Shown piece after piece: positions 12,560 to 55,969 of a stretch of 64,000 bases of DNA. This DNA comes from Chlorokybus atmophyticus. Its lineage: Eukaryota > Plantae > Mesostigma and Chlorokybus algae. A program made the position numbers and the translations under genes. The stretch covers positions 1 through 64,000 of the forward strand of contig RHPI01003129.1 of assembly GCA_009103225.1 (NCBI GenBank). The letters run 5' to 3'. The notes under the pieces are model-generated. The model was not told the DNA's origin. It did no database searches and worked only from the letters and a program-made list of their open reading frames with translations. The stretch's first letter is position 1. Each line of letters starts with the position of its first letter.

Positions 12560-12730
12560 AAGTGGGCCAACTGTATCTGGCAGGCCTCACACGTCCAATC
12601 TCCTTTGGGCACCTTGTGCAGTGGCAACATGCACCATATGCGCCATCCCGCCACACGGCGGTCATTTATCAACATCTTTGCTTCCCCATCTACGCCTCCG
12701 TCAAGGTTGGGTAAATGACACAGAGCGCAG
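12560..12730 (-). pseudogene. PHD finger at the integrase C-terminus
   Basis: CALCH...MLINDRRVAGWRIWCMLPLHKVPKGDWTCEAC matches the C4HC3 PHD pattern (VP.GDW.C..C) with some ligands mutated. Confidence 0.75.
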
Positions 12731-15700
12731 TTGTTCATCTGCTTGGTGCATGTTCTAGCATCTCTGCCCTCAAGTAGCAATACGCCGTTGCGCACCTCCT
12801 TTACTCTCGAAATGATGTTGCTGGCATTGGTGTCCAGTGTGTCCTTGGTTTGCTTTGTAGGTAGACATAGTCTCCTAACCCAATTTTCTGCATGCGGGGC
12901 TTGTAGAACCCGCTGCGCACTTGAGCGTACCGCTGAGTGTCTTTATGCTGTGCAATGACCATGACGCGTCTGAATAGCTCAGCCCTTGTGATGAGCTTTT
13001 TGAAGAAGCTGCGCGAATTAAATAAAACTACAACAGCTTTTGCTGGCTTTTTGATGGAAGCCGGAAGCTGTGGATGGCGACCATATAGCAGAAAATATGG
13101 ACTATATGCCCCCAAGGCAGCCTGTATCTCGGCTTACCCTGCATCCCATCATAATCCATGGCAGCTGAAGGTCCCAATTGCTCTTATCATAACTGCGGCA
13201 ACATTTGCGCAGTCCCCCCTTCACAGTCTGCACCAACCTCGCAGTGAGTCCGTCAGTTTTGGGATGGTTGCGGTGCGTACGTTAATTATCAATGAAGCAG
13301 TCGCGTAGCAAGTCATCAAACTTGCCCCGAAACTTCGTGCTTCGGTATGTTAGCACCTCTGCACACCCACCGAATGCTCAACACTTGGTTAAGGAAAGCC
13401 TCCGTGATGGTGTCACTGTTTATGTTCACAAGTGGTGTGACCTCCACCCACTTGCTGAAATGTTCGATCATCACTAAGATGTAGCGATAACCTCTGTTGC
13501 TTATCGGTAGGTCTCCTGCCAGGTCCAAACTCCAACAATAAAACAACCCTTGGATGGGGAGTGGGTGAAGTTGTGGTTGCTTCATTTTTCAGCTGGCCTT
13601 CACCTTGTCACATTCCACGCATTGTTGTGCAATAGCAGCAACCATTGCGGCCACTCCTCACCAATACATCGTAATCACCAACGCCAGTGTGCGCTCGACT
13701 TCGAAGTGTCCCAATTGATGGTGCAGCTTGCGCACACTTTCTTCCTTGTCTTGCAGTATGGGCACCATTCTGGTGGTGCCGTCTTTCATTGTCTTGTGAA
13801 CCTTGTCGTCCTTCCAACTGTAGCTCTGAGAACGACGCCACATGCGATCCTGAGTCGGTGAACTCGCAGCTGGTGGGTGGGTTCCAGTCCTCAAGTATAT
13901 AAACGCATCCTCGTCTAGCCAGATGTCGCCTTGACAGTGTCATCTTCAGCGGGGATGACCCCCTCATCCTCTGCTGCTAGGCAGAGCGTGTCCCTACTGG
14001 TGGTGAGGATGTCAATTGCTTGCGCGTACTCAGTCGCACTTCCCGCAATAATAAGCGGTGCTACATCCGTAGCGACATGGGTGTCAAGCCCATCATCGTG
14101 TCGGGCCTCACTCTCATCTCTGATGTCAGCCATAAGGGTCCTGCTCAATTCATCGGCCGTCCGTGTGTGCTAACCCCGCCTTGTGTTTTATGACAAAGTC
14201 ATACTCCTGTACAATCAATGCCCACCGAGCATGCTTTCAAAGGGAGTCCCTGTCAAGTGGCTGTTGGTGAGTAGCCACTTCAGCGCCTAATGGTCCGTCC
14301 AGCAGTGTGAAAAGCCTTCCAGAAAGGAAAGGCCGGAGTGCACCACTGCCCATACAGCTGCTAAACATTCTCCTTCATAAGAGCTGAAGTTGCCTTCAGC
14401 CTTGTTGTGGCTCCGGCTGGCGTAGGCCACCACGTATCCTGCTCTATCATCATCTTTGTACCAAAGCACAGCACCAATCCCAACTTACTCCAATCCGTGT
14501 GGAGGATATATTCTTTGTTGCAATCAGGTCTCCTCAGCATTTGCGCGTCACTGAGCTTCTTCCTGAGCAGTTCAAATGCTTGTTGGCAATCTTTATCCCA
14601 CTGCCAATGGTTCTCCCTCTGCAGCAGGTCATTCACGTCATTTAGGGTCTGATCAACTTGGTAAAGTTCTTTACATATCGACGGTAGTAGTTTGCCAACC
14701 TTAAGTGCTCTGGGCTTGCTCATGTCCATGGGTGCAGGTACTTGGCCCTTAGCATTTACCTTGGCTTTCTGCACTTGCACTCCCCAAGGTACAATCTCGT
14801 GTCCCAAGTATTGCACGGTGTCGGCTGCAAACTTGCACTTCTTAGGGTGACAGATCATTCCTGCGGCCTTAATTCTCTCAAACACTGCATCGAGATGTTT
14901 CAAGTGGTCCTCCACATTGTTGCTGAAGACCAGCCAACATTATCGATGTAACACCGCGTGAAGGGGAGTCCCCTCAGACCTCGATGTATCACTCTCTAAA
15001 AGACCGTTAGCTCGTTCTTCATGCCAAACGGCACTTTTCACTGGTACAGTGTGTGGCTACCCCAGAAAGCGGTTTTATGCTTGTCTTGCTCTGTAATGTT
15101 GATTCGGTGGAAGCCATCGCGCAAGTTAATAATGGTAAAGACCTTTGCGTTGGCGACATCGTCAAAGATGTCCTCTGCAGTAGGCATTGCATACCTACAT
15201 GTTTCCGTAGCTGCATTTGCAGGTCTAAAGTCCACACACATGTGCATCTGCGTCCAGTTATTCTAAATCCTTCTTTCTAGGCATGACCACAGCAAACGCA
15301 TGGCTAGACATTAACTCTTCAATCAATCCAGCTTCCAGCGGTTTGTCACATTTTTGCTTTACTCCCTCTTTTTCCACTTAACTGAGTGGGTACTCTTTTG
15401 TTCAAATGGGCTCCTCCATTTCAACTTGGATATCCATCTCGTACCTGTTGCAGCGCCCCAACTCTTGCAAGTTGAAGGCGAAGGCTTTTCGGTGTTCCCT
15501 GAGCAATGTCAACACATTTTCTTTTTCTTCTGCTGTGTTCTCTTTGCTCCCAAAGCCCTAGGTGTTTGTAGACTCATCCACACTTTTTGCTGCAGCTGCT
15601 AACACTTGTAACAAAGCAGGCAAAATTGGTTACCCCTCAGTTCCATGGCCGTTGGGCCGTTTCCCACTCCTCAGCAACTGACTCGGTCTCCAACCGTTAG

Positions 15701-15741
15701 GTTGCTTTGACGAGACGCGTGCGCCTCTTGTGCTACCTCTT

Positions 15742-16710
15742 GGGCAGCCAAAGACACAGGCAAGATCCATACCAAGCTATTCGGATCCATGGCTTGGCCA
15801 AGCAGCTGTTGTTGCTGCTGGTTTGTTAGGCGGGTAAAATTGTGGCACCTAGTATAAAGCCCATGGCTCTCTCTCTCTCATCAGCAGTAGGTTCCTCCCA
15901 CTGGCTCGTCTTGTTGTTGTATACCATGCTATGCCCATGGTTGCAAAAAGCATAACTAGTAGGGTATGCGATCAGAGTGGGTAGCGCTCTCCGTGGCTTG
16001 CCCACCTTGTTGACAGAGTACTGTGGTAATCTGTCAACTTTCTGAACTGGCTGTGGCTTCGTCCCTTCTTCCAATATGTCGCTAACCAATAGCTGACCTG
16101 GTTGTCTGTATTCTTGCTGCACTTGCTTGAATAGCTCGGTCGGTGCTAGATTGGTCCAAAACACTTTTAACCGATGTGCGCGCGAACCAAACTGTGCCAC
16201 GTCAAACATGAGTTTCGGCACAATATTGACCTCATGATTTGATATTCATGCCGGACATGATCATGACGGTCGTCAACAGAAGGTACATCTTCAATCCGGT
16301 AGGCAAGGGGGTTGTCCTTGTGTGTAGCTTGCGACACCCGTAGCTTGCAAACTAGCTCCCCAAACAACTTAAACCGAGGGTTTTCCAATCCTTTCCCAAC
16401 TCCTGCTCTGGAATGTCCTTGGCATTCCTATTCAGCGATTACCATGTCGATGAGTCCTACTGCAGACAGGTGTGCTGCTGTGACCAACCGTATGTCAAAA
16501 GGCATTGCCTTCAAACTCCCTTTCAACGCACTCTGTGGCAACAGGTGTGGATACTTCTTAGATCATGGAAGCATGATGTGCAGCGCTCTGCTGCGCCACA
16601 GGGTGCGGGTCCACATACACGTACTGCCGTACTTTAACATCAGCATTCAATGTTGCAGCTAACCCACTTGCCATGCCCGTAAAGAATTCTACAAAACGGT
16701 TACCTTCTTC
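15742..16710 (-). pseudogene. C5 cytosine DNA methyltransferase domain inside the Ty3 pol region
   Basis: Motif I VEFFTGMASGL; YVYVD; motif IV IDMVIAE*ECQGHSRAG (catalytic Cys at about 16422-16424); motif VI LAYRIEDV (ENV-like); motif VIII FDVAQFGSRAHRL..FWTNL; IX EPTADERERAMGF; X LLGQAMD. All in canonical order. Confidence 0.88.
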
Positions 16711-17085
16711 GGGTACACTCCAATGGATAGCATCGGCTTCAAGGTAGCTGTGGCAACGGCACCCCCTCGGGTCTTTCTGCAGGTGGCAACGCGTGAAACC
16801 CCTTCGCCCATGCCCCTTCTACCTTGCGCAATGCTTCGGAGCGCCGTGTGCGCAGCTTCTTGTAGACAAGCTCTACACCCGCAGCTTGCTCTTCAGTAAG
16901 TGTTATTGCTGTCTTTGTTCCCAACTCCTCGATGGAGGCAGTGTGAACTTCCTGTTCATATTGCTCCCACAACTCTCTGATGGATGGCAGCTTCGTGTAG
17001 CATGCCATGTAACGCGGGGCTTGGCCGCTTAGGCCATAGTAGCAAAAGTTGCTAATATGAGAGGATGTGTATTGCTTATTACACA

Positions 17086-17613
17086 GGGGTTTTTACGCGC
17101 GGACCAGTCGAATGCGGCGCGCAGACTATGTCTGGCACGGCTTAGCGTACCAGTGTCGCGACTGGTCCGGCGTGATTGGACCACCGATGGTTCGGCCCTG
17201 GAGCCCACCGATATGGTCCGAATGAATGGACCGGGGCTGGTCAGGTGTCCCGCGGCTTGTAAATCGGTACAGCACTGGTCAGCACGCGGCCAATGAGCCA
17301 GGGCAGCACTGGTACAGAACGCATGTAATGTACGGACCAATCATGGTGCGCATGAGCAGGACCATGCTGCAATGGTATGGTTGTAAGCGGCCCTCGTAGA
17401 TCATGCATGGTCCCGGATCAGCACTCAACAACTGCCAAGCACTGGCTGAGAAGATTATGGACCAGAATTGGAGCGGTGCATTGGCATCAACATGGAAGAG
17501 AATGTTTGATATCTTGCCTGGGCACGATGACACATCTCACCTGGTTCTTTGCACCCAAGGTCACGTGTACCAATGCTAAACGAATAGCACGCACTGGGCT
17601 GCATGGTCCCCTG
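17086..17613. mobile_element. Putative non-autonomous DNA-transposon fragment rich in GGACCA/TGGTCC motifs
   Basis: About 10 GGACC/GGTCC motifs in both orientations. Starts CAGGGG and ends CCCCTG; no TSD found. Confidence 0.35.
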
Positions 17614-22679: not shown

Positions 22680-23636
22680 TGTAACGATACCACTACTTAC
22701 TTGCTGGTCGGGGCTTGGCAAACTTACACAAGCACAAGCACTACGGACTTAGAGCGGAAGTCCCACTAGCACCACGGTGCACGGGAAGTTGCAGAAGCGC
22801 ACCAAGGGAGGAGAGGATGACCACCAACCTCTCACACAGCTCCAGCCCCAGGCACACCCTAGCCCAACACACCCACATGCACACACACAACACCACACCC
22901 CACAAGGGATGAGGGGGAGAGCCCCTTCAATAGCTACAACCAGGCACCCCACACACAAGTGGCCCTCAAGTGGTGAACACACTCTGATACCTTCTCCAGG
23001 TCGCAACTGAGCTTTTATACCACTTGCCGCTCTCCCGACCTGGCACATCATTTTCAAGATCCAAGGCCTTGTCGCTGTGTGCTGACCTTCCAGCACATGC
23101 TGACTGTGTCCACATAGGACCTGTCCCATCATAGGACATCAACCTCGGTATCATCAAACCTTGAGATTGTCAAACATCGGACAACAACCTCGGGAATATC
23201 AAACTCCCTCAGTTTTCCATAGGAGGAACAATCCTACCTCGGAACCACAACATAGGCTCTTCTAGTACATTAGTACTTGTAGATTGCCCACAGGCATCAC
23301 TTAGCCTTGCGACTGTCATCACAGTGGCAAATCGCATTACCACAATATAATCCTGTGGTTTGCCAACTTGGCTTTCTTTATTAGACCTATCACAACTTAT
23401 GGCAACTCATAGGTTTGGGCCAAAGGCCTCAGGCACTGACCAACTCTGTGCTAGCCCTCATCAATGCCTTGTGTAATTCATCATACTCGGGGCCATATAG
23501 GCTCAAGAGTAGACATACATGAGAGCGCACCCCACAAGCACTACACATGCTTATGGGATGAAGAACCCACTTGGTCTCTTCTTACTACATAAGTAAGGGA
23601 CAGAGAGTGACTTTTGCTAGCCTTATAGGCATGACA
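22680..23636 (-). repeat. 3' LTR of the deleted Ty3 element
   Basis: TGTAAC...ATGACA; TATAAAAG on the minus strand near 23015. Confidence 0.92.
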
Positions 23637-25599
23637 TGTCTCCCCACTTGCATTGCAACAACCCCGTTGAAAAAGGATGGAACACAAGTTCCGCACAGCT
23701 TCTGGCAAAGTTGGCCAAACCCGCCGATAGCCGCACTCCACGCATGAAAGCAGTGCAAGTCACGGGAGTAACAGAACCAACGCTGATACTAAGTATCAGT
23801 GTCGATGATGTTGGTATGTCACATGCAGAGATTGCAAACGTTTTAGTTTTAGTGCCAAGAAGTTCTCTCGGCTGGAGAGAACTTCTTGCTAACATAAGCA
23901 AGAGGGTGCCCACTCTGGAGCAACACAGCACAAGTGCCCTTAATGGATGCATCGGATATTACCTCAAAGGGCTTGGTGAAATCCGGCAACTGCAATACCG
24001 GCGCCGTCACCAAAGCCTCCTTATTAGACTCAAAGGCCTCTTGCTGCCTTTGTGACCATCTCCATACGACCTTATTACGTAACAGATTAGTGAAAGAAGC
24101 AACATGCGATGAGTACCCCAAGATATATATTCGCGGAAATGGTTGCTCAAGCCCAAGAACGCGCGTAGCTCGTGCACATTTTGCGGGCTAGGCCACTCTT
24201 TGACCTTAGCAACTTTCCTTAGGTCCGGGCGCACGCCCTTTTTGCTTACAATATGGCTAAGAAACTCAAGTTCCGTCTTGCCAAACTCGCACTTGGGCAT
24301 GTAAGCATAGAAATAATGCGCCCGCAATGTTTTCAACACCTCGCGCACATGCGCGGTGTGCAAGTCAGCGTCCTTGCTGACTACGAGTGTATCATCGAAA
24401 TATACAAGCACTGTCTTACCAATCAGCTTGTGAAACACACGGTTTATCATAGCTTGAAAGGTGGCTGGCACATTCGTCAGCCCAAAAGGCAGCACTTTAT
24501 ACTAAAAGTGGCCAAGCGGCGTACGAAACGCTGTCTTTGGCACATCTTTCGGAGTGGTACGTATCTAATGGTACCCACTAATCAGGTCCAAAGCGCTGAA
24601 CACCAAGGCTCCGCTCACTTGATCAAGCAAATCATCTATCCTTGGCAGTGGATACCTATTATTTGATTATCAGCTTATTTAAGGCCCGGTATTCTACGCA
24701 CATGCGTAGCCGGCCATCCTTCTTCGGCACGAAGAGGATGGGTGCCCCAAAGGGAGAGCTACTTGGCTCAATGAATCCCTTTGCAAGCAAGGCTTTGATC
24801 TGCCCCTCCATGTCCGCATACTCAGCCGGACTCAGCCTATGTCAGGTCTGAACGGAGGTTGCGCACCCGATTTAAGAGGGATCGTATGCCACACGTCCCT
24901 CTCAGGTGGCAATACAGGCAATTCAGCTTGAAACACGTCAGCATACTCAGATAATGACCTTTTAGAGCCGCGTCTTGCGGTTTGCCATTGGTGTCATCAA
25001 TTGCAGTGGTTGGGTTGTCAGTGGCAAACGGTCGGACTAGCACCAGAAGAGGTTGAGCTCCATGGCGAACTGCCCTCTTCACCTGCAAAGCACTCAACAA
25101 ACAACATGAGACATCGGTACCAGATCTGTCATCACTTGCAGGGGATACGACATTATGACCATTTGCGCGCAAGGTCACACAACCCCACCCTTTGCGTACA
25201 CTGCAAAGTTTGGTGTTTGCGTCCGTGCGCAAGCCACATGCTTGCTCCCAATGGCTGCTGACAATGACATCCACGCCTGGCACCTCAACTGGGATGACCA
25301 AGAACTTAAGCAGAGCATGATAGCGGTGCACATGCACGGACAAGCGTACGACGCCCCGTACAGGGATTTTACGCTTGTTCAAGGCCACAATCGAATCATC
25401 ACACTTGGTGACACGAATGCCTAAGCGTCGCACGAGAGACTCACTCACAAAGTTCTCCGGCGTGCCCGTGTCTATTATCAAGCTGCATGGCACGTGCGCA
25501 ACTGATGCCTTAAACAACCAAGTCAAGCTTAGAGAACTTACCGGATGGATTATAGGTGGGTCATACAACATATGTGCACGCCCCTTTTCCAGCTTGACT

Positions 25600-25914
25600 T
25601 CACCCAAGACTTGCATACCTTTGGTGAGGCGAACCCACGGGCCGGGATGCTTGGGTACAATAACGCACGCACTCGTGTTGTGCGCGCTCTTGCTTTTGCA
25701 TGCAACATAGCTTGAGCATGTTGTACAGCTTGTCAATAGGCGCATGAAGCAAAACACATTTGCCCGCACAGTCGTTTTGCAAGAATTGAGTGTCTACATG
25801 TACACCCATCTCATTCTCCGACACAGCAACATTGCATGGTTGGGGTTGGCAGGACATCAAGCCACTATAAGCACATTGCTCATCAACATCCTCAGAGCAA
25901 CTTGCCATTGACAA
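25600..25914 (-). pseudogene. Degenerate Dam/N6-MTase-like module before the protease
   Basis: With one frameshift corrected it reads FLQNDCAGKCVLLHAPIDKLYNMLK/YVACKSKSAHNTSACVIVPKHPGPWVRLTKGMQVL. Confidence 0.5.
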
Positions 25915-26581
25915 TCCCTGTTACATGCATGGCTTTTGGCTGACTTCATGCCCCTCGTTTATTTATGAGAACATGGCCCCGAGCGGCGTCCGCTTCAGCC
26001 TCAATGAGATGAGCTTCACGGTTGCGCTTTTGATCTCGGTAACCGCGTCGAGCATCACTGGAACCTTCAACATGTCTTCCATGAGGGACTTGATCAGCTC
26101 TCGAAAATTGCAAACGAGCAATGTCGGCCTCATGTTGTTGTTGCAACCCTATTACTTGCCCACACAATGTGGCAACCAACATGGATAGCTGTTGAGTGGT
26201 TTTGCCAACATCATTGCCCCAAGATGCCTCCTCACATGTTGCTTGCTGTTGCTCAGCCATCTCCACAATGGTTACCGTAACAGATGCAGACACGCGCACA
26301 CGCGCGTACACGAGCAGCAAAGTGCAGCAAAGGCAGATGCGTGTGCAAGACTATGCACCAGCAGCAAACGCACACAAGTAATGCACAGATCAGCGTGCAC
26401 AACGGCCCACACCTAGCATGCAAGTGTGCGTGCAGCTGCAACGATCAACTAACACGCATAATCAGCATCAAAACACTGCCATGCAGCACATGCATGCAAA
26501 GAATGCAACGCATGCACCGATCAGCAAGTGCACAGGCTGATGGACAAGCATGCAAGGCTTGGAAACAAGCTCCGAGGTCAA

Positions 26582-27538
26582 TGTAATGATACCACTACTT
26601 ACTTGCTGGTCGGGGCTTGGCAAACTTATGCACAAGCACTAAGGACTTACAGCGGAAGTCTAACCAGCACCACGGTGCACGGGAAGTTGCAGAAGCGCAC
26701 CAAGAGAGGAGAGGATGACCACCAACCTCTCACACAGCTGTAGCCCCAGGCACACTCACGCCCAACACACCCACATGCACACACACAACACCACACTCCA
26801 CAAGGGATGAGGGGGAGAGCCCCTTCAACAACTACAATCAGGCACCCCACACACAAGTGGCCCTCAAGTAGTGAACACACTCTGATACCTACTCCAAGTC
26901 GCAACTGAGCTTTTATACCACTTGCCGCTCTCCCGACCTGGCACACAGCATTTCCAAGGTCCAAGGCCTTGTCATTGTGTGCTGACCTTCCAGCACATGC
27001 TGACTTTGTCCACATAGGACATGTCCCATCACAGGACATCAACCTCGGGATTATCAAACCTCGAGATTGTCAAACACATGACAACAACCTCGGGAACATT
27101 AAACTCCCTCGGTTTTCCATAAGAGGAACAATCCTACCTCAGAACCACAAACATAAGCTCTCCTAGTATAATAGTACTTGCGGATTGCCCACAGGCATCA
27201 CTTAGCCTTGCGACTGTCATCACAGTGGCAAATCGCATTACCACAGTATAATCCTGTGGTTTGCCAACTGGGCTTTAATTATTAGAGCTGTCACACATCC
27301 TGTGGCAACTCATAGGTTTGGGCCAAAGGCCTCAGGCACTGACCAGCTCTGTGCTAGCCCTCATCAATGCCTTGTGTAGTTCATCATACTCAGGGCCATA
27401 TAGGCTCAAGAGTAGACCTACATGAGAGCGCACCCCACAAGCACTACACATGCCTATGGGATGGAAACCCACTTGGTCTCTTCTTACTACATACGTAAGG
27501 GACAGAGATTGACTTTTGCCAGCCTTATAGGCGTGACA
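26582..27538 (-). repeat. 5' LTR of the deleted Ty3 element
   Basis: TGTAAT...GTGACA, colinear with 22680-23636 with many substitutions. Confidence 0.92.
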
Positions 27539-30699: not shown

Positions 30700-31800
30700 C
30701 TAACTCGACTGGCTCATCGACTATGCCACCCGTGCCAATGATGATAGCATCATGTCCAGAAGCACCCGCAGTGAAAAATTTCTGTATGATGGTTTGATGG
30801 CCAGCGTCAAACATCTCATGCTTGATGTCCACATTGCGCGGCTGCCGTATGGTGAGCTGTTGATGCTCTGAGTTGGGGCAGTCATTGGTGGCGATGAAGG
30901 CCTCCACACCATCACAGAATCTCATGCACTCTCCGCCACTGGGATGCGTGGGGGTGATTCCTCCTCCTCCTCCTCCTCATTTACAACACAAGGCATTGTA
31001 AGTGCCCACTCGTACACGTTTTGCAACGAGATCCCTCACCTTCAGCCTCATCAGGCTCAACGGCGGCTCCTATAATGCCTCCGGCGCTTTCACGGATGTC
31101 CTCATCGCTCTGCCTCGGCTTCGGTTGGAAGGGTGTCATCGACGTGAACGAACTCAGCTGGGGAGAGCATCTCCGCACGTGGCATGGGAAGTCGCTGCAT
31201 GATGTCCTCAATCTCCTGCACAATAACCTGCTCGTGTACGTCAGTGTCGGGAGTGGGCGCGTGCCAAGCAGGGGGGGTGATGCCGCTCTTCCTTTAGCAA
31301 TTCGAGATGGTGATTGCGGTGAGCTCTCCGTACGCTTCGCAACACGTGATTGCCTCCCTCACCTGCACCTTCACCGTGCGCAAGTCGGTTTTCGGGTGGG
31401 CATCATGTTGCTGCAGCAAGTACACAACAAGCTTGCGCTTGTACCTGCCATGACCAAAGTGAGAATGCATTACAAACTCTGACGCACAAGGGGGGTCAGG
31501 GGCTTGGGTACAATAACGCACGCACTCGTGTTGTGCGCGCTCTTGCTTTTGCATGCAACATAGCTTGAGCATGTTGTACAGCTTGTCAATNGGCCTTGAA
31601 CGCAGCAATAATGCCTGCGTTAAGAGGTTGAACCTTGCTGGTTGTGTTGAGAGGCAGGAACAGACACTTCACGGTGTCCACCTGCGTCTTGAACCCTCTC
31701 TCCATGCCCGCGACCCCATTAGCTTCATCTGAAAAGCGAAGTTGCAGAGCCAGCAACTGAAAGATCAGCATGAGACAATGTGTAGTTATACACACGAACA
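30700..31800 (-). mobile_element. Decayed pogo/Tigger transposase, C-terminal half
   Basis: FLPLNTTSKVQPLNAGIIAAFKA and TAITISNC*RKSGITP (TI.NCW.K.G motif), split by a foreign 89-bp piece and a single N. Confidence 0.75.
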
Positions 31801-45639: not shown

Positions 45640-47100
45640 GTCACTTTTAAGAGGGTCCGAAGGTTGAGGACAAGGTCTTATTAGACATTGGGAACATTAG
45701 GCTCAACCACTGACAAGTCTAGTGGTGTGTGTAAGTTCCTGCCATGGTGGCTTGGGCCGTTCACTATTTGCAACTGTAAGAACACATGCCTTTAGCTGTA
45801 GCTGTATGGCTCGAATCTCAAAAGAACATGCGTATCCACAATGTGTTTCATGAGGCACTACTCAAGCCATACAGCGTGATGGCCGCGTACAGCCACCTCC
45901 ACCTCCTGTTGAGGTAGAGGTGGAGGGCATAGGGCGACCTTAAGTATGAGGTTTGGGCCATTGGCGAACGGTTCAGGAAGGGCTTCCGAGTTGAGTACCT
46001 TGTAAAGTGGATGGTTATGGTGAAGAGCATAACTTCTTGGAGCCAATCGTCAACTTGGCAAACTATGCTGCTTGCAAATCCACATGTGCCACTTAAGACT
46101 CTTCAAACAGAGCATGTGCTCAGTTGCAACATGTGCAACATTCTCTTCTGTGACATGTCAATATGCGCGCACTGTTACTTAATATTACACAATGAGGGTC
46201 TTCCATTAGGTCACATCAGCAAAAGGCGCTGATTGTGGAGGATATCATTTGGAGTTATGCTACATTTTTGATACTTAATATCTAAATTGGTTGTCACTCC
46301 TCCCGTGACTTACACATTAATTTATGCGTACTACTACTATTAATGTGCGATGATTAAAAGGGTTGGCCACCCTTGCTGGCAATGCAATTATCGTGTGGGG
46401 CTTGTGCTCCATCATTTTGTAAGGTGGAAGTTGCAATGCAAGTGGGGATCCCCACTTGCATTCGGACAAGACACTCTTTCGGACGTGACATTCCTCCGGA
46501 GGAATGTCATGTCCGAAGGACTGGCTTAAGTCACTCTCAGTTCCTTATGTGGTAAGTAAGAGCTGAGTGAGGATTTTGTATAGTCATGGTATGTGTAGCA
46601 CTTGGCATACGTACTACATATCACTAGTACTCATGAAGTGGTCATGTACTTGGTGCATCAAGACATAGCAACTACACGAGGCACTGTCCAACAGTAGGTT
46701 TTAGACCGGTCAGTGTCAACCGCAGAGTTGCTAAGGCACTTAGCAGCTTGCAACAAGAGTGCTGCATATGTCGATGTGCCCGACGATGGACAAGGTCAGC
46801 ATGTGCTGACAAATCAGCGCATAGGTGATGAGGCCTTGTTGGCCTCGGACATCTTATGTGTTCAGGCATAGAGCAGCGGGTTGTATAAAAGCATGACCAT
46901 CACCTTGTGGTGGTAAGGAGTTACTGGCCTAGCAAGAACACTTTTGTGGGGTGCCTGGCCAAAGCTGTTGAAAAGGCTCTCCCCATCTAAACTGTTGTGG
47001 GTTATAAATAGTTGCAAGATGTGTGGTAAAGTTCATCTACTTGTGCGGATGTTTGTGCCTCTTGGAGTCTTCAACGCTCAGTAGCAAATGAGAGGTAAGT
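45640..47100 (+). mobile_element. Old 3' remnant of a chromovirus-type Ty3 (GPY/F, chromodomain, PPT, decayed LTR)
   Basis: DKVLLDIGNIRL, KFLPWWLGPFTI, MRIHNVFH, QPPPPP, YLVKW..YGEEHN. GTTGCAATGCAAGTGGGGA equals the PPT region of the 22680-27538 element. From TGTCATG at 46505 the sequence resembles that family's LTR (AAGTCACTCTC, GTCAGCATGTGCTG, GTATAAAAGC). Right boundary approximate. Confidence 0.75.
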
Positions 47101-48390
47101 CAATGTGACAACCACACACTTTACAGCATCTCCCTACCACTACAAAGGGACCTTGATTAATAAACCACCCACGTATACAAGAAGTTTTTGATCCCCTTTT
47201 CCCGCAACACTTTGATCTACAAATGAACAATGAACATTACATGTTGATAACTTGGCAAGAAACTCAGCAAGAAGATGCTATCGCTTAAGCAATAGCAGCA
47301 CTACGCAATCACTAATAACTGAGCCACCAAAGCGCAAAAGACGGAGCACGCGCTTAACACGCTATGCGCGAAGTGCATCTTGCAACCCACAAAAACACAA
47401 TAATAGCGATCACACATAACGCTGGCGTAGTTCGTCGCGTCACGTCTCCTCTACTACCATGTTATCTTGGTGCACCTACTAACACATGTCCACATGTTGC
47501 TACTTTGATTCTACCATGTATGCAGCATCGACATATACATAGCACTGCAAATTCATGCAATGACATCTCCTTCTACTTATACACTAGCATGTCTAGCTAC
47601 CTGTACAGTGAATAGGCTACACGAGGGTGATGCCCTCCCCTCTCGCCCTCCTCGCCCCTCCTCCTTGCAAATGCACTTGCTGAGTAGGGTTTGATGGGAT
47701 GTGCCAGTGCCACACGCTCACAACACAGCCGTTGTTGAACAATCTCAGCTGAGGCACAAATCGCATACAATACAACAAGTTGTATTGCATAGCACCACTC
47801 TTACCAATCATTGTGGCTTCTTGCTAGTGCACACAGTGATATGGTATGGAAACTTGCTCACCACATAGCTACATCTATTCAGTCACACTACTTGTACACG
47901 GAATAAGTCAACTCCCATGTCTTAATTCAGCACAACCAATTAGGAATGCACTAATGATACATGATAAACGCTACTTGAACTTGCACTTTTCTAGCTCTAG
48001 CTCCAATCCACGCCTTCAATTATGAGTAGACCGTCTCCTTGACCAGCTCTTGACTGCCACATGGATGCCCTCTCATTCCATCAGTCCTTCCCCACTCACA
48101 ACTCTCGCAATAGCTCCGAATACACCCATCAGATCTGAGTTACGCTAATCTTTAGATATTCTTACTGTAACACGTTGAATGCACTTCCTCTCACTCAATG
48201 CATTTTACCCCCGCTAGAGACTTCGCTTTAAGAGAATCACCCCGCTAGTAGCACAGAAAGTGAGATTATCAAACGAAATGTAGGCAAATATTGGTACATA
48301 GGAGAATATGCCTAACCGCGAAGCGCATGACTTTTCATGTTGTTTTTGCAAGTGTTTATGAGCGATATGTTAAGGTCGGGGAGTAGCGCG

Positions 48391-48916
48391 TGTAACGGGA
48401 GCAATAATAATAGGGGTATTATTGCTACCTGAATAACACATTTTGTATGAATAAGTATTTAAATATGCTTATTTATACCTCTTTTCTACGGTTCCTCGCT
48501 TATTAAAGGCTATGATGCTTTATCATAGCTTAGATAAGTCCCAATGGGTGTAGAACCGCTTATTCAAGCCTATTTAGTGTCACATTCGATATAATGTGAT
48601 CACTATCTCGTTAGGTACCTTACGATAGGTATCTTTGGATAGGTACCTTATCGATAGGTACCTTATCTGAGCTGTGATTGGCTCACGCTAGATTTCCTAA
48701 CTACCCTATCTGTAGGGTCGATATCTAGTTGTGAGTTAATTATCGAGAGTTATATAGTTGATATACTCTTGATATAAAAGGTCACATCAATCTGATGTGG
48801 GGACTTTCAGTTCTCTGCTCAGTGGCGGCCACGCCGTCGAAAGGCTTGTCATAGGCGGTGTGGGTGTTGGGGTAGAGGATTGAAGGGGCATCACCGGCGA
48901 CGGTGGTGCTGTTACA
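48391..48916 (+). repeat. 5' LTR
   Basis: TGTAACGGG...TGTTACA; TATAAAAG near 48773. Confidence 0.97.
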
Positions 48917-48917
48917 T

Positions 48918-48931
48918 TGGTATCCAGGAGC
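48918..48931 (+). promoter_or_regulatory. Primer-binding site, initiator-Met-like
   Basis: TGGTATCCAGGAGC one base after the LTR; resembles TGGTATCAGAGC with two extra bases. Confidence 0.55.
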
Positions 48932-49831
48932 TGGGGGGTGACGTGGGTACTTATAGGGGGCGGCGACCTGCTTTCGGCCAATCAGAAGCGTCGGCGGCGG
49001 CCTCCTATTCGTCCACGCAGCCCAAGCTTCAAGTTCGCTTCCCTGCGCTACCTCCACGTTGAAGCCACCTATCAAAGAGGCGGCCTCTCCACGTGTGAGG
49101 TACCATCACACGTCGGTGACTTGCCTGCTTGCCTGCTTGTCAGCTGCTTGCCAGGTGCTTGCCAGGTGCACGTGTGTACTTTCATGCACATCACACAGTG
49201 GCTTGCCAGTGCACTATCATTGCTTGCAGTGATTGCCTGTCATTGCATGCGGTGATTGCGGCTTGCTAGTGTGCCATCACTGTTTGTCACACTTAGTGCA
49301 CTGTCATTGCTTGCAGTGATTGCCTGTCATTGCATGCGGTGATTGCTTGTCATTGTGCTTGCCAGTGCATGTCACAGTTAGTCACCGTGCGGCTTGCCTG
49401 TTGCATGCCTGTGACGTACCTGTGACCTGCCAGCGGCTTTGCCGGGTCGTTTGACCCGGGTCCGTAAGTTCCAAACCAAACTGTTCCCAAACCCTCCCCC
49501 TCTGGCTTCGGCCTGGAGATCGGGACTTGGTTAGGACAGTTGTGGGGAGGTTCTAGGACAATCTGTTCCCAAACCCTGTTAGTCTGAAACCCTCCCCCTC
49601 TGGCTTCGGCCTGGAGATTGGGACTTGGTTGAGGACAACACAGGGTTAGGACATTCTGGTCCCACTCAGACTTGTTCTGTTTGGTGACACTCCAGATCCA
49701 ACCTTTCCTATTTTGGGACTGGTTTGGACTCTGTTTGGGACTTTTACAACTTGGGGTCATTTTGATCCTCTCGTTAAACCTGGTCCATTGGTGAGGTTCT
49801 CACCATCCCATTCTGCCTGTTTTGCAGGCAA

Positions 49832-51007
49832 ATGGAAGAAAACTCGGTGCCCACCTCAAAAGGGGAGAGCTCAGAAAAAGAGCAACTTTCCCGTGAGGAG
49901 GAATTTCCATCCATGGAAGATATTCCGAATCCGGATGATGCACCTGATGAGTCTCAAGCTGCTAAAGCTGCGGAAGCTTCAGTGGATGATAGATCACCTT
50001 CTATATTCCCTGAGTTTTCTATTCGCATGACACAGCAGGACTTGATGGAGCATTTCCTTAGCACCTATGATCAGGACCCTCGTGAGGCAATTGTCTCATT
50101 CGTGAACTTTCTCTTCCTATTGGCAGAAAAAGTTTCAAAGCTCACCACCTTTATGGGGCGAGATTGGGAGGGGCAGATGGGTGAAGGCAAACGTGTTCTG
50201 AATATGATCGAGCGTCTGCAGCGTGCTGACGGTGGTCCACCTGTTCAAGCACTTGCTCGTCCTGCCGAGTTTGTTCCCAACAAGCAAGCGGCCATCTTCG
50301 ACTGGCTTGTGAAGTTGCGACACTATGTCAACTCCCTTCACATTTCTGAGGAGGGGAAATTGCGTGTAGCTGAGTTGCTGATCCCAAACGATGCTTTGGC
50401 AGAGTGGTACCGCCGTAAGCAACGGGATACCAACCTCGGGCGGGAAGTAAATCAGTTGTGCTTTTTCATGGAGCAGCGCTATGGTGGCGCAGATCCTGCC
50501 CAGGTTGCTCGCAACCAGCTGCACAACCTGCGTCAGAACGGGCGTCCGGTTCAGCAGTATATCCAGGATTTTCAGTCGTTTGTCAGCAAGATCAATGCTG
50601 GCAAACTACCTATCAGTGATGCTGATCAGCTGGATATGTTCAGGCGTGGCTTGGACACAGATCTCGTGCAGCATGTGGCCGTCAACCCCGCGAGTTTGCA
50701 AGAGTGGGCCTCGACGGATTTACCAATGCTGATGCAGATGGTTGCTGCTGTGGACAGTGTAAAACGCTCTCACGCCAACATGCAAACCACGGCAAAAGAG
50801 GCAGCCCCGGTTTCAGCTGCAAAGCGCCCGGCCACTGGCAACAAACCTTTTGTGAAAAAGGCGAAACCATCTCATCCTGCTGGCCCCTACAATGCGGCCA
50901 AATCCATCATCACTTGCAGTTTCTGCAAGAAGACAGGTCATGGGGAGGCTACGTGCTATGCAAAACAGAATGCACAGAAGGCCAAGCAGCAGAGAGAAAA
51001 GAAATAG
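49832..51007 (+). CDS. gag: Gag (391 aa) with CCHC zinc knuckle
   Basis: Open ORF; retrotransposon-gag-like LRQNGRPVQQYIQDF; CSFCKKTGHGEATC. Confidence 0.93.
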   Translation: MEENSVPTSKGESSEKEQLSREEEFPSMEDIPNPDDAPDESQAAKAAEASVDDRSPSIFPEFSIRMTQQDLMEHFLSTYDQDPREAIVSFVNFLFLLAEKVSKLTTFMGRDWEGQMGEGKRVLNMIERLQRADGGPPVQALARPAEFVPNKQAAIFDWLVKLRHYVNSLHISEEGKLRVAELLIPNDALAEWYRRKQRDTNLGREVNQLCFFMEQRYGGADPAQVARNQLHNLRQNGRPVQQYIQDFQSFVSKINAGKLPISDADQLDMFRRGLDTDLVQHVAVNPASLQEWASTDLPMLMQMVAAVDSVKRSHANMQTTAKEAAPVSAAKRPATGNKPFVKKAKPSHPAGPYNAAKSIITCSFCKKTGHGEATCYAKQNAQKAKQQREKK

Positions 51008-51010
51008 GAA

Positions 51011-54000
51011 TTGTCCGTGGTTGGTAGCTTAGTCGAGCAGAACGACTTTAAAAACTCTGTACTTCTTGATAAAGTTTCCTCTCTTTGCGATGTATCAGAT
51101 GTATGGACTGATATGAGCACACCACCTGTGTTGAGAAATGCAAACGGTTGTGTTTTAATCAATGTTCCATTCTCTGAATTAGTAACTGCTGTTAAGCACT
51201 TACACGAGTTGCAATTACAACATGCTGTCACTGCATGTGTAGTTATCCCTCGATATCATGGCCCGTGGTCGCGATTGTTGAAAGGGGGAGAAGTAATCAT
51301 GCAACTCTCACGCAAAGATACAGGAGCTTCACCATTGCAAGTGATCTTTATCAAGTCTGCTACCAATCACGGCACTCCGACATTAGCTACATTTGATGGT
51401 CACTCAGTGCCACTCAAATGGAGATTTGAGAGTCAACTTATGGGTACACCATGTACAGCATTGATTGATACTGGTGCAAACCATAACTTTGTTGAACATG
51501 CTTGGGTGAAACGTAATAACATTCCTTTCACACCAGTCACGTCATATGTACGTGCTGCTGGTTCCACTCTCAATGCAATGGGAGAGGTAAAAGGGCGTTT
51601 TGTTATTAATGGCCATATAACCCGACCAGCCTTCATCGTGGTGGATATTGGTATCCCCGGGGTGGATGTTGTTTTAGGGGAACAATGGCACACTGAAGCA
51701 GGTTTACAATTAGACTCTCGAGCCAATACGTGCACCCTTCGTAAAGGGAAACGTAGGATGACTTTAACAGCATCTGTACTCGCACGTATACCACGCGATA
51801 ATGTTCCGCTCCTCTCTGCTATGCAATTGAAACGTTGCATGCGTAAACGTGAGGAAGTATACTTACTGCACTTACGACAGGTGGAAACACCTGCTGAACA
51901 GGCTATCAGTGACCCTGTGGTGCAGTCACTTACGGAACAATACGCAGATGTATTTCAGGATGAACTCCCAGAGTTGCCTCCCGATCGAAACATACATCAT
52001 ACCATTCCGTTAGAGGAGGGGGCAAAGCCACCTTGGCGGCCTATATACAGGCTAAGTCCCTTAGAACACGCGGAGATGGAAAAACAGCTCAAAGAGTTAT
52101 TGGACAAAGGTTTAATAACAAAGAGCATATCTCCTTTTGGTGCACCAATTTTGTTTGTGCCCAAAAAGAATGGCAAGCTACGCATGTGTATTGATTACCG
52201 TGCGTTGAACAAGGTCACTGTGAAAAACAGATACCCTTTGCCTCGGATTGATGATTTGTTTGATAAGCTGTCAGGTGCAACAGTGTTCAGCACGCTGGAT
52301 TTGACCAGTGGTTATCATCAAATCAAAATCCACCCGTCGGATATACAAAAAACTGCATTTCGCACCCCACTAGGACACTTTGAGTATAAAGTGTTACCAT
52401 TTGGGTTAACAAATGCACCGGCTACATTTCAGACAGCAATGAACGCGGTATTTGCTGATGAATTGTACAAGTTTGTACTGGTATATCTAGACGACATTAT
52501 TGTGTTCAGCAAAACCCGGGAGGACCACCACAAGCATGTGGAATTGGTTCTAGCTAAGTTACGCGAACACAAATTCTATGCCAACCTGTCCAAATGCAAC
52601 TTTGCAAAGGATGAACTACCCTTTTTAGGGCATGTGATTGGCAAAGAAGGATTGAAACCAGATCCTCAGAAGGTGTGTGCGGTAAAGGATTGGCCACCAC
52701 CCAAGGATGTACATCAGTTACGTGCTTTCTTGGGGCTAGCCAATTATTTCCGCAAGTTCATGCGAGCATATTCTGGCATGGCAAATCCTTTAACATCTTT
52801 ACTAAGAAAAGATGTTAAATTTGTGTGGACGGAGGCACACGAGGTTGCTTTTACACGCATTAAAGATGCATTAACACAAGCCCCTGTGTTAGCCTTCCCC
52901 GACCACACCAAGCCTTTTGTGGTGATCAGTGATGCTTCCACCATTGGGTGTGGGGCAGTCCTTCTACAAGATGACAGACCATGTGCATATGAAAGCAGAA
53001 AGTTCATTCCTGCTGAACGTAATTACACAACCACTGAGCAGGAATTGCTCGGGGTGGTGCACGCGCTGCGCACATGGCGTTGCTACTTGGAAGGGGTGGA
53101 GTTTTCAGTGATTACTGATCACAACCCGCTCACATTCTTTCATACGCAACAAAATCTGTCGAGGCGGCAAGCTAGGTGGAATGAATTCATTTCTCGTTTC
53201 ACTTTCACTTGGCAATACCGTCCGGGTCGCACCAATGTGGCGGATCCACTAAGTCGCAGCCCTGCTCTTTTGGCACTTACGCGCTCTCGAAGTACGCGTA
53301 ATGTACAACAGCCTGAAGATCCTTTCTTAAAGGAAGTGTCCACAGGTTATAACTCAGATGATTGGTTTAGCAGTCAAACCAACTTGCAACAGCTTACTGC
53401 TGTTAGCAATCTGTGGTATAAAGGGGAGCAGTTGGCAATTCCCAACTCGGGCGACTTGCGTAAGCAATGCTTACATTCAGTGCATGACCCGCCGTATGCT
53501 GGGCATTTGGGGAAACACAAAACACTCAAATCTGCGCAACAGTTATACTGGTGGCCGTCAATGTCAGCTGACGTGGATCAATATGTTCGCACATGTGACG
53601 TGTGTCAACGTAATAAGCCACTACGACAAAAACAAGCGGGATTGCTTAAACCATTGGCAATTCCAGAACAAAAGTGGGATAGTGTCAGTATGGATTTGAT
53701 TACTGACCTACCTGAAACAGCAGCTAAATACACTGCTATTGTGGTTTTTGTCGACCGTTTGACTAAAATGGTGCATTTTGCCCCGTGTTGCACAACTGTA
53801 AGTGCACGGGACTTGGCACACTTATTTGTGTCCACGGTCTTTCGCGTTCACGGTATACCGCGTGAACTTGTCACAGATCGTGATCCTCGTTTTGTCTCCA
53901 AGTTTTGGCGAGAAGTCTGTGAATTGTTGGGGGTAAAACAAAGCATGTCGACTGCTTTCCACCCGCAAACGGACGGTCAAACTGAGCGAGCAAATCAAAT

Positions 54001-54739
54001 ACTGGAAGAAATGCTTCGCCACTATGTGGCTCCTAATCATGCTGATTGGGACAGGTACTTGCCAATGGCAGAGTTCGCTGTGAACAACGCGTGGCAAGAA
54101 AGTGTAAAGGAAACCCCATTTTTCTTAAATTATGGGATTCGCCCAAACACACCAGCGTCATTGCGTGTACCTCGCAATGCCCTGACTGTGCCAGCGGCAA
54201 AGGAATTTGCCACTAATATGCAAGAAAATTTGGCTCGAGCCAAGCTGTGTCTGTCAGAAGCACAGGACAGGCAAAAAGCTTATGCTGATACACATCGAAA
54301 AATGGCCACTTTCGATGTCGGCGATAAAGTTTTGCTTAATGCAAAAAACATAACCATCAAAGGTACGGGTGCTCGCAAGTTGCTGCCCCGATGGTTAGGT
54401 CCTTTCTCTATCACTGATAGAGTTGGTACGCACGCTTATCGACTGCAATTGCCCCCAAGTGTGCGTATACACAACGTGTTTCATGTAAACTTGTTGAAAC
54501 CTTACCGCTCAGACGGTAGAACACAGCCTCCACCACCGCCAATTGAGGTGGACAGCGAGCTCGAATACGAGGTGGAAGCTATATTGAACCATAAGCTAAA
54601 TGGTCGAGGACGCGCAACTCGCTATTTGGTGAAATGGAAAGGGTATGGCCCGGAACATAACAGTTGGGAGCCCGACAGGCATCTTACGCACTGCCGCGAG
54701 TTGCTTCGAGCTTATTGGGATTCATGTCCTGTCCCATAA
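51011..54739 (+). CDS. pol: Pol: Dam-like module, aspartic protease, RT, RNase H, integrase, chromodomain
   Basis: 1242 open codons in the same frame as gag after one TAG, with no ATG at its start. LIDTGA; YLDDI; SDAS; GHLG...C..C; SMDLIT; WLGPF; YEVEAIL...YLVKWKGYGPEHNSWEP. Confidence 0.96.
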   Translation: MSVVGSLVEQNDFKNSVLLDKVSSLCDVSDVWTDMSTPPVLRNANGCVLINVPFSELVTAVKHLHELQLQHAVTACVVIPRYHGPWSRLLKGGEVIMQLSRKDTGASPLQVIFIKSATNHGTPTLATFDGHSVPLKWRFESQLMGTPCTALIDTGANHNFVEHAWVKRNNIPFTPVTSYVRAAGSTLNAMGEVKGRFVINGHITRPAFIVVDIGIPGVDVVLGEQWHTEAGLQLDSRANTCTLRKGKRRMTLTASVLARIPRDNVPLLSAMQLKRCMRKREEVYLLHLRQVETPAEQAISDPVVQSLTEQYADVFQDELPELPPDRNIHHTIPLEEGAKPPWRPIYRLSPLEHAEMEKQLKELLDKGLITKSISPFGAPILFVPKKNGKLRMCIDYRALNKVTVKNRYPLPRIDDLFDKLSGATVFSTLDLTSGYHQIKIHPSDIQKTAFRTPLGHFEYKVLPFGLTNAPATFQTAMNAVFADELYKFVLVYLDDIIVFSKTREDHHKHVELVLAKLREHKFYANLSKCNFAKDELPFLGHVIGKEGLKPDPQKVCAVKDWPPPKDVHQLRAFLGLANYFRKFMRAYSGMANPLTSLLRKDVKFVWTEAHEVAFTRIKDALTQAPVLAFPDHTKPFVVISDASTIGCGAVLLQDDRPCAYESRKFIPAERNYTTTEQELLGVVHALRTWRCYLEGVEFSVITDHNPLTFFHTQQNLSRRQARWNEFISRFTFTWQYRPGRTNVADPLSRSPALLALTRSRSTRNVQQPEDPFLKEVSTGYNSDDWFSSQTNLQQLTAVSNLWYKGEQLAIPNSGDLRKQCLHSVHDPPYAGHLGKHKTLKSAQQLYWWPSMSADVDQYVRTCDVCQRNKPLRQKQAGLLKPLAIPEQKWDSVSMDLITDLPETAAKYTAIVVFVDRLTKMVHFAPCCTTVSARDLAHLFVSTVFRVHGIPRELVTDRDPRFVSKFWREVCELLGVKQSMSTAFHPQTDGQTERANQILEEMLRHYVAPNHADWDRYLPMAEFAVNNAWQESVKETPFFLNYGIRPNTPASLRVPRNALTVPAAKEFATNMQENLARAKLCLSEAQDRQKAYADTHRKMATFDVGDKVLLNAKNITIKGTGARKLLPRWLGPFSITDRVGTHAYRLQLPPSVRIHNVFHVNLLKPYRSDGRTQPPPPPIEVDSELEYEVEAILNHKLNGRGRATRYLVKWKGYGPEHNSWEPDRHLTHCRELLRAYWDSCPVP

Positions 54740-54873
54740 ACTGTGGGCTTGGTTTTATGACAGACTGGCAGTGCAGTTTCATTACCACCCTGTCATTTCC
54801 TGCTATCTCACTGGTTACAATTACTCGAAATCAAGCCTGATCAACTTGAGTTCAACGAGGACGTTGAAAACCT

Positions 54874-54886
54874 AAGTGGGGGGGAA
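54874..54886 (+). promoter_or_regulatory. Polypurine tract
   Basis: AAGTGGGGGGGAA immediately before the 3' LTR. Confidence 0.85.
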
Positions 54887-55412
54887 TGTAACGGGAGCAA
54901 TAATAATAGGGGTATTATTGCTACCTGAATAACACATTTGGTATGAATAAGTATTTAAATATGCTTATTTATACCTCTTTTCTACGGTTCCTCGCTTATT
55001 AAAGGCTATGATGCTTTATCATAGCTTAAATAAGTCCCAATGGGTGTAGAACCGCTTATTCAAGCCTATTTAGTGTCACATTCGATATAATGTGATCACT
55101 ATCTCGTTAGGTACCTTACGATAGGTATCTTTGGATAGGTACCTTATCGATAGGTACCTTATCTGAGCTGTGATTGGCTCACGCTAGATTTCCTAACTAC
55201 CCTATCTGTAGGGTCGATATCTAGTTGTGAGTTAATTATCGAGAGTTGTATAGTTGATATACTCTTGATATAAAAGGTCACATCAATCTGATGTGGGGAC
55301 TTTCAGTTCTCTGCTCAGTGGCGGCCACGCCGTCGAAAGGCTTGTCATAGGCGGTGTGGGTGTTGGGGTAGAGGATTGAAGGGGCATCACCGGCGACGGT
55401 GGTGCTGTTACA
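54887..55412 (+). repeat. 3' LTR
   Basis: Near-identical to 48391-48916. Confidence 0.97.
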
Positions 55413-55969
55413 GCGCGTGACGCGTGGCAAAAGTCGTGACGCGCGTGATGAGTAGGGTGATAGGCAAAGTGTGACACGCGATCAGCGTGACGAGAGTGAA
55501 GGCGCAGTGGTCGTGACGTGACGTGACACGCGTGACGTGATGGGTGTGATGGGTGTGATGAAACCGCACTTATACCATAATTATGCTCTCCTGGCACCCA
55601 AGCATGATATTCTTTTAGACGTCAAGAGATTTACCCTGCTAAGAGCAAAAGACATCGGAGGATAAGCGGTATGCTCTTAAAGGGGGTATATTGTATACAC
55701 TTATATAACATCCTCATCTACCTTCCCATCACACAACCCAAATGACATTCTTGTCTTAATATGCCTTTATAAGCATATGCAACTACCTCATGCCTACAAC
55801 CAGCCCACAATCTGGTATTGCCCTGCATAATGTCGTATCTTATGACAATCGCTCTATACATGTTATAAAATAATAAAGGTGCATCACGCAAAGAGTGTTA
55901 CCAATATACACACAACCATATACATATATATATATAATAAAGGTGTATTACGCAAATAGTTTTATTAAT

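Follow-up and report, generated by a model that had tools for sequence, protein, structure and literature searches.

The window analysed here, a 64,000-nucleotide stretch of the streptophyte alga Chlorokybus atmophyticus (contig RHPI01003129.1, positions 1 to 64,000, forward strand), contains a complete Ty3/Gypsy chromovirus at positions 48391-55412, and the stretch under study (51011-51340) is the opening of the pol open reading frame (ORF) of this element. The first ~120 residues of the predicted Pol protein are probably an eroded and catalytically inactive remnant of a Dam domain, inherited within a chromovirus lineage of the type described as DAM-LTR (LTR, long terminal repeat) and not captured in this genome.

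The element is bounded by two LTRs of 526 nt (48391-48916 and 54887-55412), which start with TG, end with CA and are 99.43% identical by blastn, with differences at 3 of 526 positions. They are flanked by a 5-bp target-site duplication (TSD), GCGCG, read directly from the sequence (48386-48390 on the left, 55413-55417 on the right). Directly 3' of the 5' LTR lies a primer-binding-site (PBS)-like tract, TGGTATCCAGGAGC (48918-48931), which we take to resemble the 3' end of initiator-Met tRNA, and a polypurine-like tract (PPT), AAGTGGGGGGGAA (54874-54886), adjoins the 3' LTR. The gag gene (49832-51007; 391 codons) encodes a Retrotrans_gag domain and a zinc knuckle and ends at an in-frame UAG (51005-51007); pol (51011-54739; 1242 codons) follows in the same frame. 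As determined with Pfam, Pol comprises a retropepsin (PR) with the DTG motif within LIDTGA (51437-51751, Pol residues 143-247; Asp_protease_2/RVP_2), reverse transcriptase (RT) and RNase H (RH) (52157-53200; RVT_1 at residues 383-543, E 1.1e-39, and RT_RNaseH at 606-730), and an integrase (INT; H2C2, rve and SH3) with a C-terminal chromodomain (53453-54721). All these features lie on the plus strand, apart from the TSD, which has no strand. LTRs with a TSD, gag, the PR-RT-RH-INT order and a C-terminal chromodomain identify the element as a Ty3/Gypsy chromovirus that inserted recently. The original prediction had called it young and intact, which is largely right in view of the LTRs, the TSD, the PBS- and PPT-like tracts and the presence of all Pol domains in one ORF.

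At the start of Pol, ~140 residues precede the protease. Translation of 51011-51340 yielded both peptides that had been quoted in support of a Dam- or N6-adenine methyltransferase-like module at this place, NGCVLINVPF... and ...TACVVIPRYHGPWSRLLKG, and located NVPF (51161-51172, plus strand) at Pol residues 51-54. In two alignments with relatives (A3 and A5), NVPF occupied exactly the columns of the catalytic NPPF/NAPF tetrad, so that the proposed correspondence with NPPF was borne out. The recognisable core of the eroded Dam-like domain corresponds to Pol residues 39-102 (51125-51316, plus strand) and consists of strand beta4, the NVPF loop, a helix, strand beta5 (ACVVIP) and a GPW..LLKG string, as delimited by profile matches, hhalign, a family hidden Markov model (HMM; residues 46-102) and the predicted local distance difference test (pLDDT). 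The whole span that superposed on class-I methyltransferase structures (Pol residues 6-120; 51026-51370, plus strand; VIA-align ranges and pLDDT) is longer, with an N-terminal third of low model confidence that is unrecognisable by sequence.

The residues preceding the protease aligned with an older copy at 25.9-25.5 kb. This copy (25494-25920, minus strand), detected by tblastn and the family HMM, carries the tetrad HAPI (25735-25746), a 1-nt frame break near 25689 and an HNTSACVIVP..GPW..KGMQV core. The two strings of it quoted in the original prediction were found at ~25764 and ~25673 on the minus strand in different reading frames, the break between them having gone unmentioned. It belongs to a truncated element (22680-27538, minus strand; sequence comparison), in which LTRs of ~960 nt (22680-23636 and 26582-27538; 92.4% identical) enclose an internal part of just 2.9 kb that stops within RT/RNase H. 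No similarity between the gag of this element and that of the young one was detected by tblastn. The young and older module cores alone matched each other by tblastn within the window at E 4.6e-6. Further, when the six frames of the 64 kb were searched with a family HMM built without window sequences, matches were obtained at the young copy (E 4.4e-9), the old copy (5.2e-12 and 1.8e-6) and a 31.5-kb fragment (2.7e-7), and nowhere else in the window. The last of these is an isolated 104-nt piece of the older family's module (31502-31604, minus strand), 96% identical to 25649-25751 by sequence comparison and detected by the family HMM. We also observed that this orphan piece adjoins an N at 31591. 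Judged by sequence, the similarity between the young and old copies is beyond chance, and the alignment of both supports the proposal that the module stands at a homologous place, at the start of Pol and before the protease, in two diverged Ty3 families.

Direct recognition of the module was not achieved, as searches were blank for Pfam (E≤1), PDB sequences (E≤10) and a word-based protein search with Pol residues 1-140. Likewise, neither the young copy nor the old pieces reached the PF05869 gathering score, with no match even at E≤1. A profile made solely from the window copies (A2; the young N-terminus plus both frame pieces of the older one) gave 14 matches in a library of 1.84 billion proteins (E 6.1e-7 to 6.4e-4), all at profile positions ~38-100. 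Of the first ten, seven contain PF05869, and in most cases retropepsin and RT domains come directly after it. The Pfam cut-off of 28.1 bits was exceeded by P0002 (30.5), P0003 (31.9) and P0009 (32.7), P0012 scored 39.5 bits for PF05869, and P0015 combines Dam (residues 35-101), PR (189-293), RT (439-596) and RNase H in one ORF of 719 residues. In P0002, the PF05869 match (82-169) overlaps the A2 match (117-183), and the chain of homology is valid because the residues matched by Pfam overlap those matched by the window profile. A second search round added 12 new members, nine of them with PF05869, and hhalign of A2 against these 12 gave a probability of 96.6% and an E value of 6e-10 over residues 39-100. 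When the family profile was compared by sequence with solved structures, PCIF1 was matched at E 0.03, in an alignment that spans NPPF and the VPEW strand. The nearest clusters in the ESM Atlas were PF05869 and PCIF1_WW (score 0.81), which we regard as a lead only. Profile A6 had no match in viral contigs, and the young module had none in JGI metagenomes. Homology of the window module to PF05869 is thus shown in a transitive manner only, through relatives that pass the Pfam threshold. Together with the family HMM and methyltransferase-like structural matches, these profile matches and the hhalign result (E 6e-10) support the view, put forward in the original prediction, that the block derives from an adenine methyltransferase, here a phage-T1-type Dam (PF05869) N6-adenine methyltransferase.

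Structure prediction, which had been suggested as a check, gave results in the same direction. With a 30-row alignment, AlphaFold2 modelled the module at a pLDDT of 72.6 overall and of 88-95 over residues 45-115, while residues 1-46 were poorly modelled (below 50-56); the three window rows alone gave a model of no use (40.6). The confidently modelled order is a strand (VLI), the NVPF loop, a long helix, a strand (ACVVIPR) and two further strands. When this model was compared with known structures by VIA-align, approximately 46 of the 50 best rows were S-adenosylmethionine (SAM) methyltransferases, each aligned over ~100 residues, and adenine-N6 enzymes were prominent among them. Z values were 6-7.2, namely 7.2 for KsgA, 7.0 for DIMT1, ErmC' and EcoDam (the latter over 100 residues at 4.1 A), 6.4 for METTL5, 6.3 for PCIF1 (103 residues) and 6.0 for T4 Dam; since these lie in the grey zone of the tool, the fold evidence is supportive, not decisive. 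The model is thus supportive of a fold of the class-I methyltransferase type in the C-terminal half of the domain (beta4, tetrad loop, helix D, beta5, beta6 and beta7). The matches are almost exclusively to SAM methyltransferases at modest Z, and those of Foldseek were not significant.

The extent of erosion was evaluated against the canonical relatives, which share an N-terminal block (F.hDACCN..GSN...S..SFL), the tetrad N[PA]PF and the strings HY..CK, P..TSACI.VP.W, LLKGM, KG..LF and PW.V.VYYD.P. At columns conserved in at least 80% of the family, the young copy keeps 12 of 35 residues and the old copy 16 of 35. In the young copy the DACC..GSN block is gone except for one Asp, and the match to the family HMM starts only at Pol residue 46. 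The deletions differ: the young copy lacks ~14 columns (kG..lF.ap) and the old copy ~21 adjacent ones. Neither NVPF in the young copy nor HAPI in the old one conforms to the tetrad (N/D)PP(Y/F/W). Among 27 relatives, NPPF/NPPY occurs in 11 and NAPF/NAPL in nine, and the others have HPPF, HPPA, HADP, LPPV, HVPC or YVST/YIST. Many relatives (P0004, P0005, P0008, P0014, P0019, P0021, P0022 and P0027 were inspected) have NAPF, not NPPF, and others are clearly dead (HVPC, YVST, HADP, LPPV). Based on this variety of tetrads, in which the first Pro is often replaced, loss of canonical motifs seems to be recurrent in the Dam family of DAM-LTRs. The relative with YVST/YIST is represented by three near-identical proteins (P0011, P0016 and P0017) encoded on two contigs, with open PR and RT, and such elements with a dead tetrad therefore evidently still multiply. 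The N-terminal block of the transposable element (TE) members aligned with the D/E..A/C.S..N block of PCIF1, the presumed cofactor-side motif of PF05869/PCIF1. For a tree, the older copy was entered as one row by joining its two frame pieces at each alignment column, the break being left as gaps and no residue being inserted. Both window copies, P0011/P0017 and P0001 fell outside a canonical clade with 92/94 support; their branches are long (2.14 changes per column for the young copy) and this placement was not relied on.

We also examined how the module has evolved between the two elements, a comparison that involves one copy per family in the window. Identity between young and old was 42% in the core (Pol residues 71-101) and 39% in the whole module, vs. 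22% upstream and 26% downstream; the protease reached 28% and RT 54%. Within the core, 15 of 31 first, 20 of 31 second and 10 of 31 third codon positions were identical, the last value being at the random level. Core dN was 0.61 and dS was saturated, so that a classical dN/dS between the two window copies could not be computed. This pattern, with 42% identity in the core compared to 28% in the protease and codon position 2 far better kept than position 3, is characteristic of long-term purifying selection acting on the core peptide, in line with the selected Pol domain that had been proposed. Two outcomes had been named beforehand as speaking against the original prediction, a lack of Rossmann methyltransferase similarity and neutral evolution of the segment; the similarity was present and the evolution of the core was not neutral.

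With regard to the expression of the module, only one in-frame UAG (51005-51007; AAA UAG GAA), within a Lys/Gln/Glu-rich tail, stands between gag and pol. The ORFs of relatives likewise begin shortly upstream of the Dam domain, which suggests a native gag/pol boundary at this position. The Dam-like module would be produced within Gag-Pol, provided that the in-frame UAG is passed by readthrough or by some other route.

Retrotransposons of this kind have been described in a preprint of May 2026, which reported DAM-LTRs including a DAM-chromovirus-like clade of Chlorophyta, a single prokaryotic origin of the Dam domains with transfers from DIRS elements, and a catalytic triplet "composed of Asn-Pro-Pro in almost all" DAMs (10.64898/2026.05.21.726589). 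According to the same source, even canonical eukaryotic TE Dam domains produced no gain of N6-methyladenine (6mA) in E. coli assays, and DAM-LTR elements are absent from Metazoa and Streptophyta, streptophytes being without abundant 6mA (10.64898/2026.05.21.726589). Its authors argue that LTR elements carry Dam to exploit 6mA chromatin of the host, and cite the absence from streptophytes as support (10.64898/2026.05.21.726589). In the Chlorokybus element, a Dam-related domain was found in one ORF with PR, RT, RNase H, integrase and chromodomain, between 526-nt LTRs. The element thus resembles a DAM-LTR in being of the Ty3/Gypsy chromovirus type with a PF05869-related domain in its polyprotein and with relatives that carry Dam, PR, RT and RNase H; the short eukaryotic domain, with a five-strand sheet and few helices, is also alike. 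It differs in its host, a streptophyte alga, in its triplet (NVP or HAP) and in the loss of the N-terminal block and of part of the C-terminal half. We therefore regard it as an eroded variant of the published kind, in a lineage where the preprint detected none. The screen in that study employed hmmsearch at 1e-5 (10.64898/2026.05.21.726589), and would miss the Chlorokybus copies because the module is invisible to Pfam even at E≤1.

Other known systems are more distant. The DIRS1-group methyltransferase-like domain belongs to the same eukaryotic Dam family and is the source of the LTR-borne copies according to the preprint (10.64898/2026.05.21.726589); DIRS1 elements, however, have a tyrosine recombinase and carry the domain elsewhere, and are likened here by the description in the preprint, not by sequence. 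Relatives of the module match positions ~16-104 of 169 of the phage T1-type Dam profile (PF05869), including the NPPY/F tetrad and a hydrophobic strand ending in Pro, whereas the window copies score nothing in Pfam and the last third of the profile is unmatched even by canonical TE members. PCIF1/CAPAM (PDB 6irx), a cap-specific adenosine-N6 methyltransferase, is the best methyltransferase by sequence profile (E 0.03) and reached Z 6.3 over 103 residues, but it is a large cellular RNA enzyme with helical and WW domains, and the likeness is remote and of borderline significance. METTL14 is a catalytically dead partner with a methyltransferase fold and an EPPL tetrad. It likewise combines a degenerate tetrad with a retained fold and a non-catalytic role, which is an analogy only.

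We interpret these results as follows. A Ty3/Gypsy chromovirus lineage would carry a phage-T1-type Dam domain between Gag and the protease, inherited from an ancestor that predated the split of the two Chlorokybus families in the window. Methyl transfer would have been lost with the N-terminal block, the first Pro of the tetrad and the conserved KG..LF segment. Purifying selection, in turn, would maintain the folded core as a structural component at the N-terminus of Pol, where it may act as a spacer or pro-region before the protease, or as a residual nucleic-acid-binding surface, and not as an enzyme. Because of the lost motifs and the deletions, the module is probably no longer an enzyme, and the "methylation enzyme cargo" of the original prediction appears overstated. 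The repeated capture in this lineage that it envisaged was not supported for the two Dam copies either: as both belong to a single Dam-PR-RT family that occurs well outside this genome, one older, inherited acquisition is indicated.

It is nevertheless conceivable, though unlikely, that the module has remained an active N6-adenine methyltransferase whose tetrad, NVPF, is divergent, and which would methylate the cDNA or DNA of the element in the way suggested for canonical DAM-LTRs. Three residues of the tetrad (Asn, the second Pro and Phe) are retained, which is why we leave a small share of the probability to residual activity, and N-A-P-F is frequent in relatives, so that position 2 tolerates change; besides, the strands of the core show good conservation and were modelled with confidence, and the element is young and otherwise complete. 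This reading has to contend with the mere 12 of 35 conserved positions left, an unrecognisable DACC..GSN block, ~14 deleted conserved columns, the HAPI of the sister copy and the low pLDDT of residues 1-46 (below 50-56), as well as with canonical relatives being inactive in E. coli and the reported scarcity of 6mA in streptophytes (10.64898/2026.05.21.726589). An opposite explanation, that the segment is decaying junk with no selected role and remains only because deletion has yet to remove it, also seems to us rather improbable. It would account for two different deletions in the same C-terminal region of the two families, for the lost catalytic and N-terminal motifs and for the long branch of the young copy (2.14 changes per column), but not for a core identity (42%) above that of the protease (28%) and flanks (22-26%), nor for codon position 2 being kept at 20 of 31 sites when position 3 is random (10 of 31). 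Moreover, the external family HMM still detects the core at E 4e-9, while neutral sequence would be unrecognisable at such divergence. That the methyltransferase resemblance arose by chance and the segment is a lineage-specific Gag-Pol linker is hardly credible. Although the direct searches with Pfam, PDB sequences and words found no match and Foldseek was not significant, the matches in the whole library were significant, involved proteins that pass the Pfam Dam threshold over overlapping residues, and were accompanied by the hhalign result (E 6e-10) and by structural matches that are almost all methyltransferases.

Several points weigh against an inactive, structurally retained Dam remnant, despite its being the reading that we prefer. 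With respect to the fold, VIA-align Z values below 8 can reflect a common arrangement, Foldseek found nothing in the PDB at E≤0.001 and returned methyltransferases together with GNAT acetyltransferases at E 0.03-0.3, and the alignment behind the AlphaFold2 model is dominated by canonical members. With respect to inactivity, the case is based on sequence, and the roles given to DACC..GSN and KG..LF come from the PF05869/PCIF1 alignment and general knowledge of methyltransferases. NVPF keeps Asn, the second Pro and an aromatic residue, so the tetrad alone is no proof of inactivity, and the first Pro may be dispensable because NAPF is common among the relatives. Finally, production of Pol and the module via readthrough is an assumption: no significant RNA structure that would stimulate it was found in the 100 nt after the UAG (z +0.51 vs. 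shuffles), and the UAG may be either a native site of readthrough or a recent nonsense mutation.

As an eroded Dam remnant, the module indicates that the DAM-LTR lineage did reach a basal streptophyte alga, where its catalytic hallmarks were lost, a constrained core was kept and insertion was very recent. This fits a "use it or lose it" decay after loss of the host mark, and implies that screens at Pfam thresholds under-count such elements. The finding is incremental, its particular point being the complete, very young host element, which makes an entire copy available for testing the role of the relic. It is doubtful that the domain does more, either as a selected pseudo-methyltransferase needed by the mobile element (for binding of nucleic acid or chromatin, or for gating of the protease) or with its NVPF still writing 6mA. 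If so, Chlorokybus would provide the first case among streptophytes of a functional, Dam-derived module borne by a TE, and a natural setting for testing the link that has been proposed between host 6mA and DAM-LTRs.

The original prediction had counted a further Ty3 element (12553-17340, minus strand), said to carry a C5 DNA methyltransferase (DNMT), as the third copy in the window with methyltransferase cargo. This element is split into many short open pieces, and RT and RNase H were confirmed in it at 14364-14939. The supposed DNMT pieces (15829-16818) had no Pfam or PDB sequence match in quick tests of the broken pieces, and the assignment was thus not confirmed. One of these pieces shows, by eye only, an F.G..G string like that of motif I. 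We also considered a dual "EpiLTR", in which this element would contain a Dam module as well, and ruled it out as the family HMM had no match there.

Two additional observations were made in and around the young element. The leader between its 5' LTR and the gag ATG (48917-49831) is unusually long, at ~915 nt, and carries two pairs of ~52-nt direct repeats (49208-49259/49295-49346 and 49489-49538/49587-49637), which are 96-98% identical. Approximately 2.4 kb upstream of the element, at 45703-46040, lies a fragment resembling an integrase C-terminus and chromodomain, 34-50% identical to the young Pol, which is a remnant of a further Ty3 copy.

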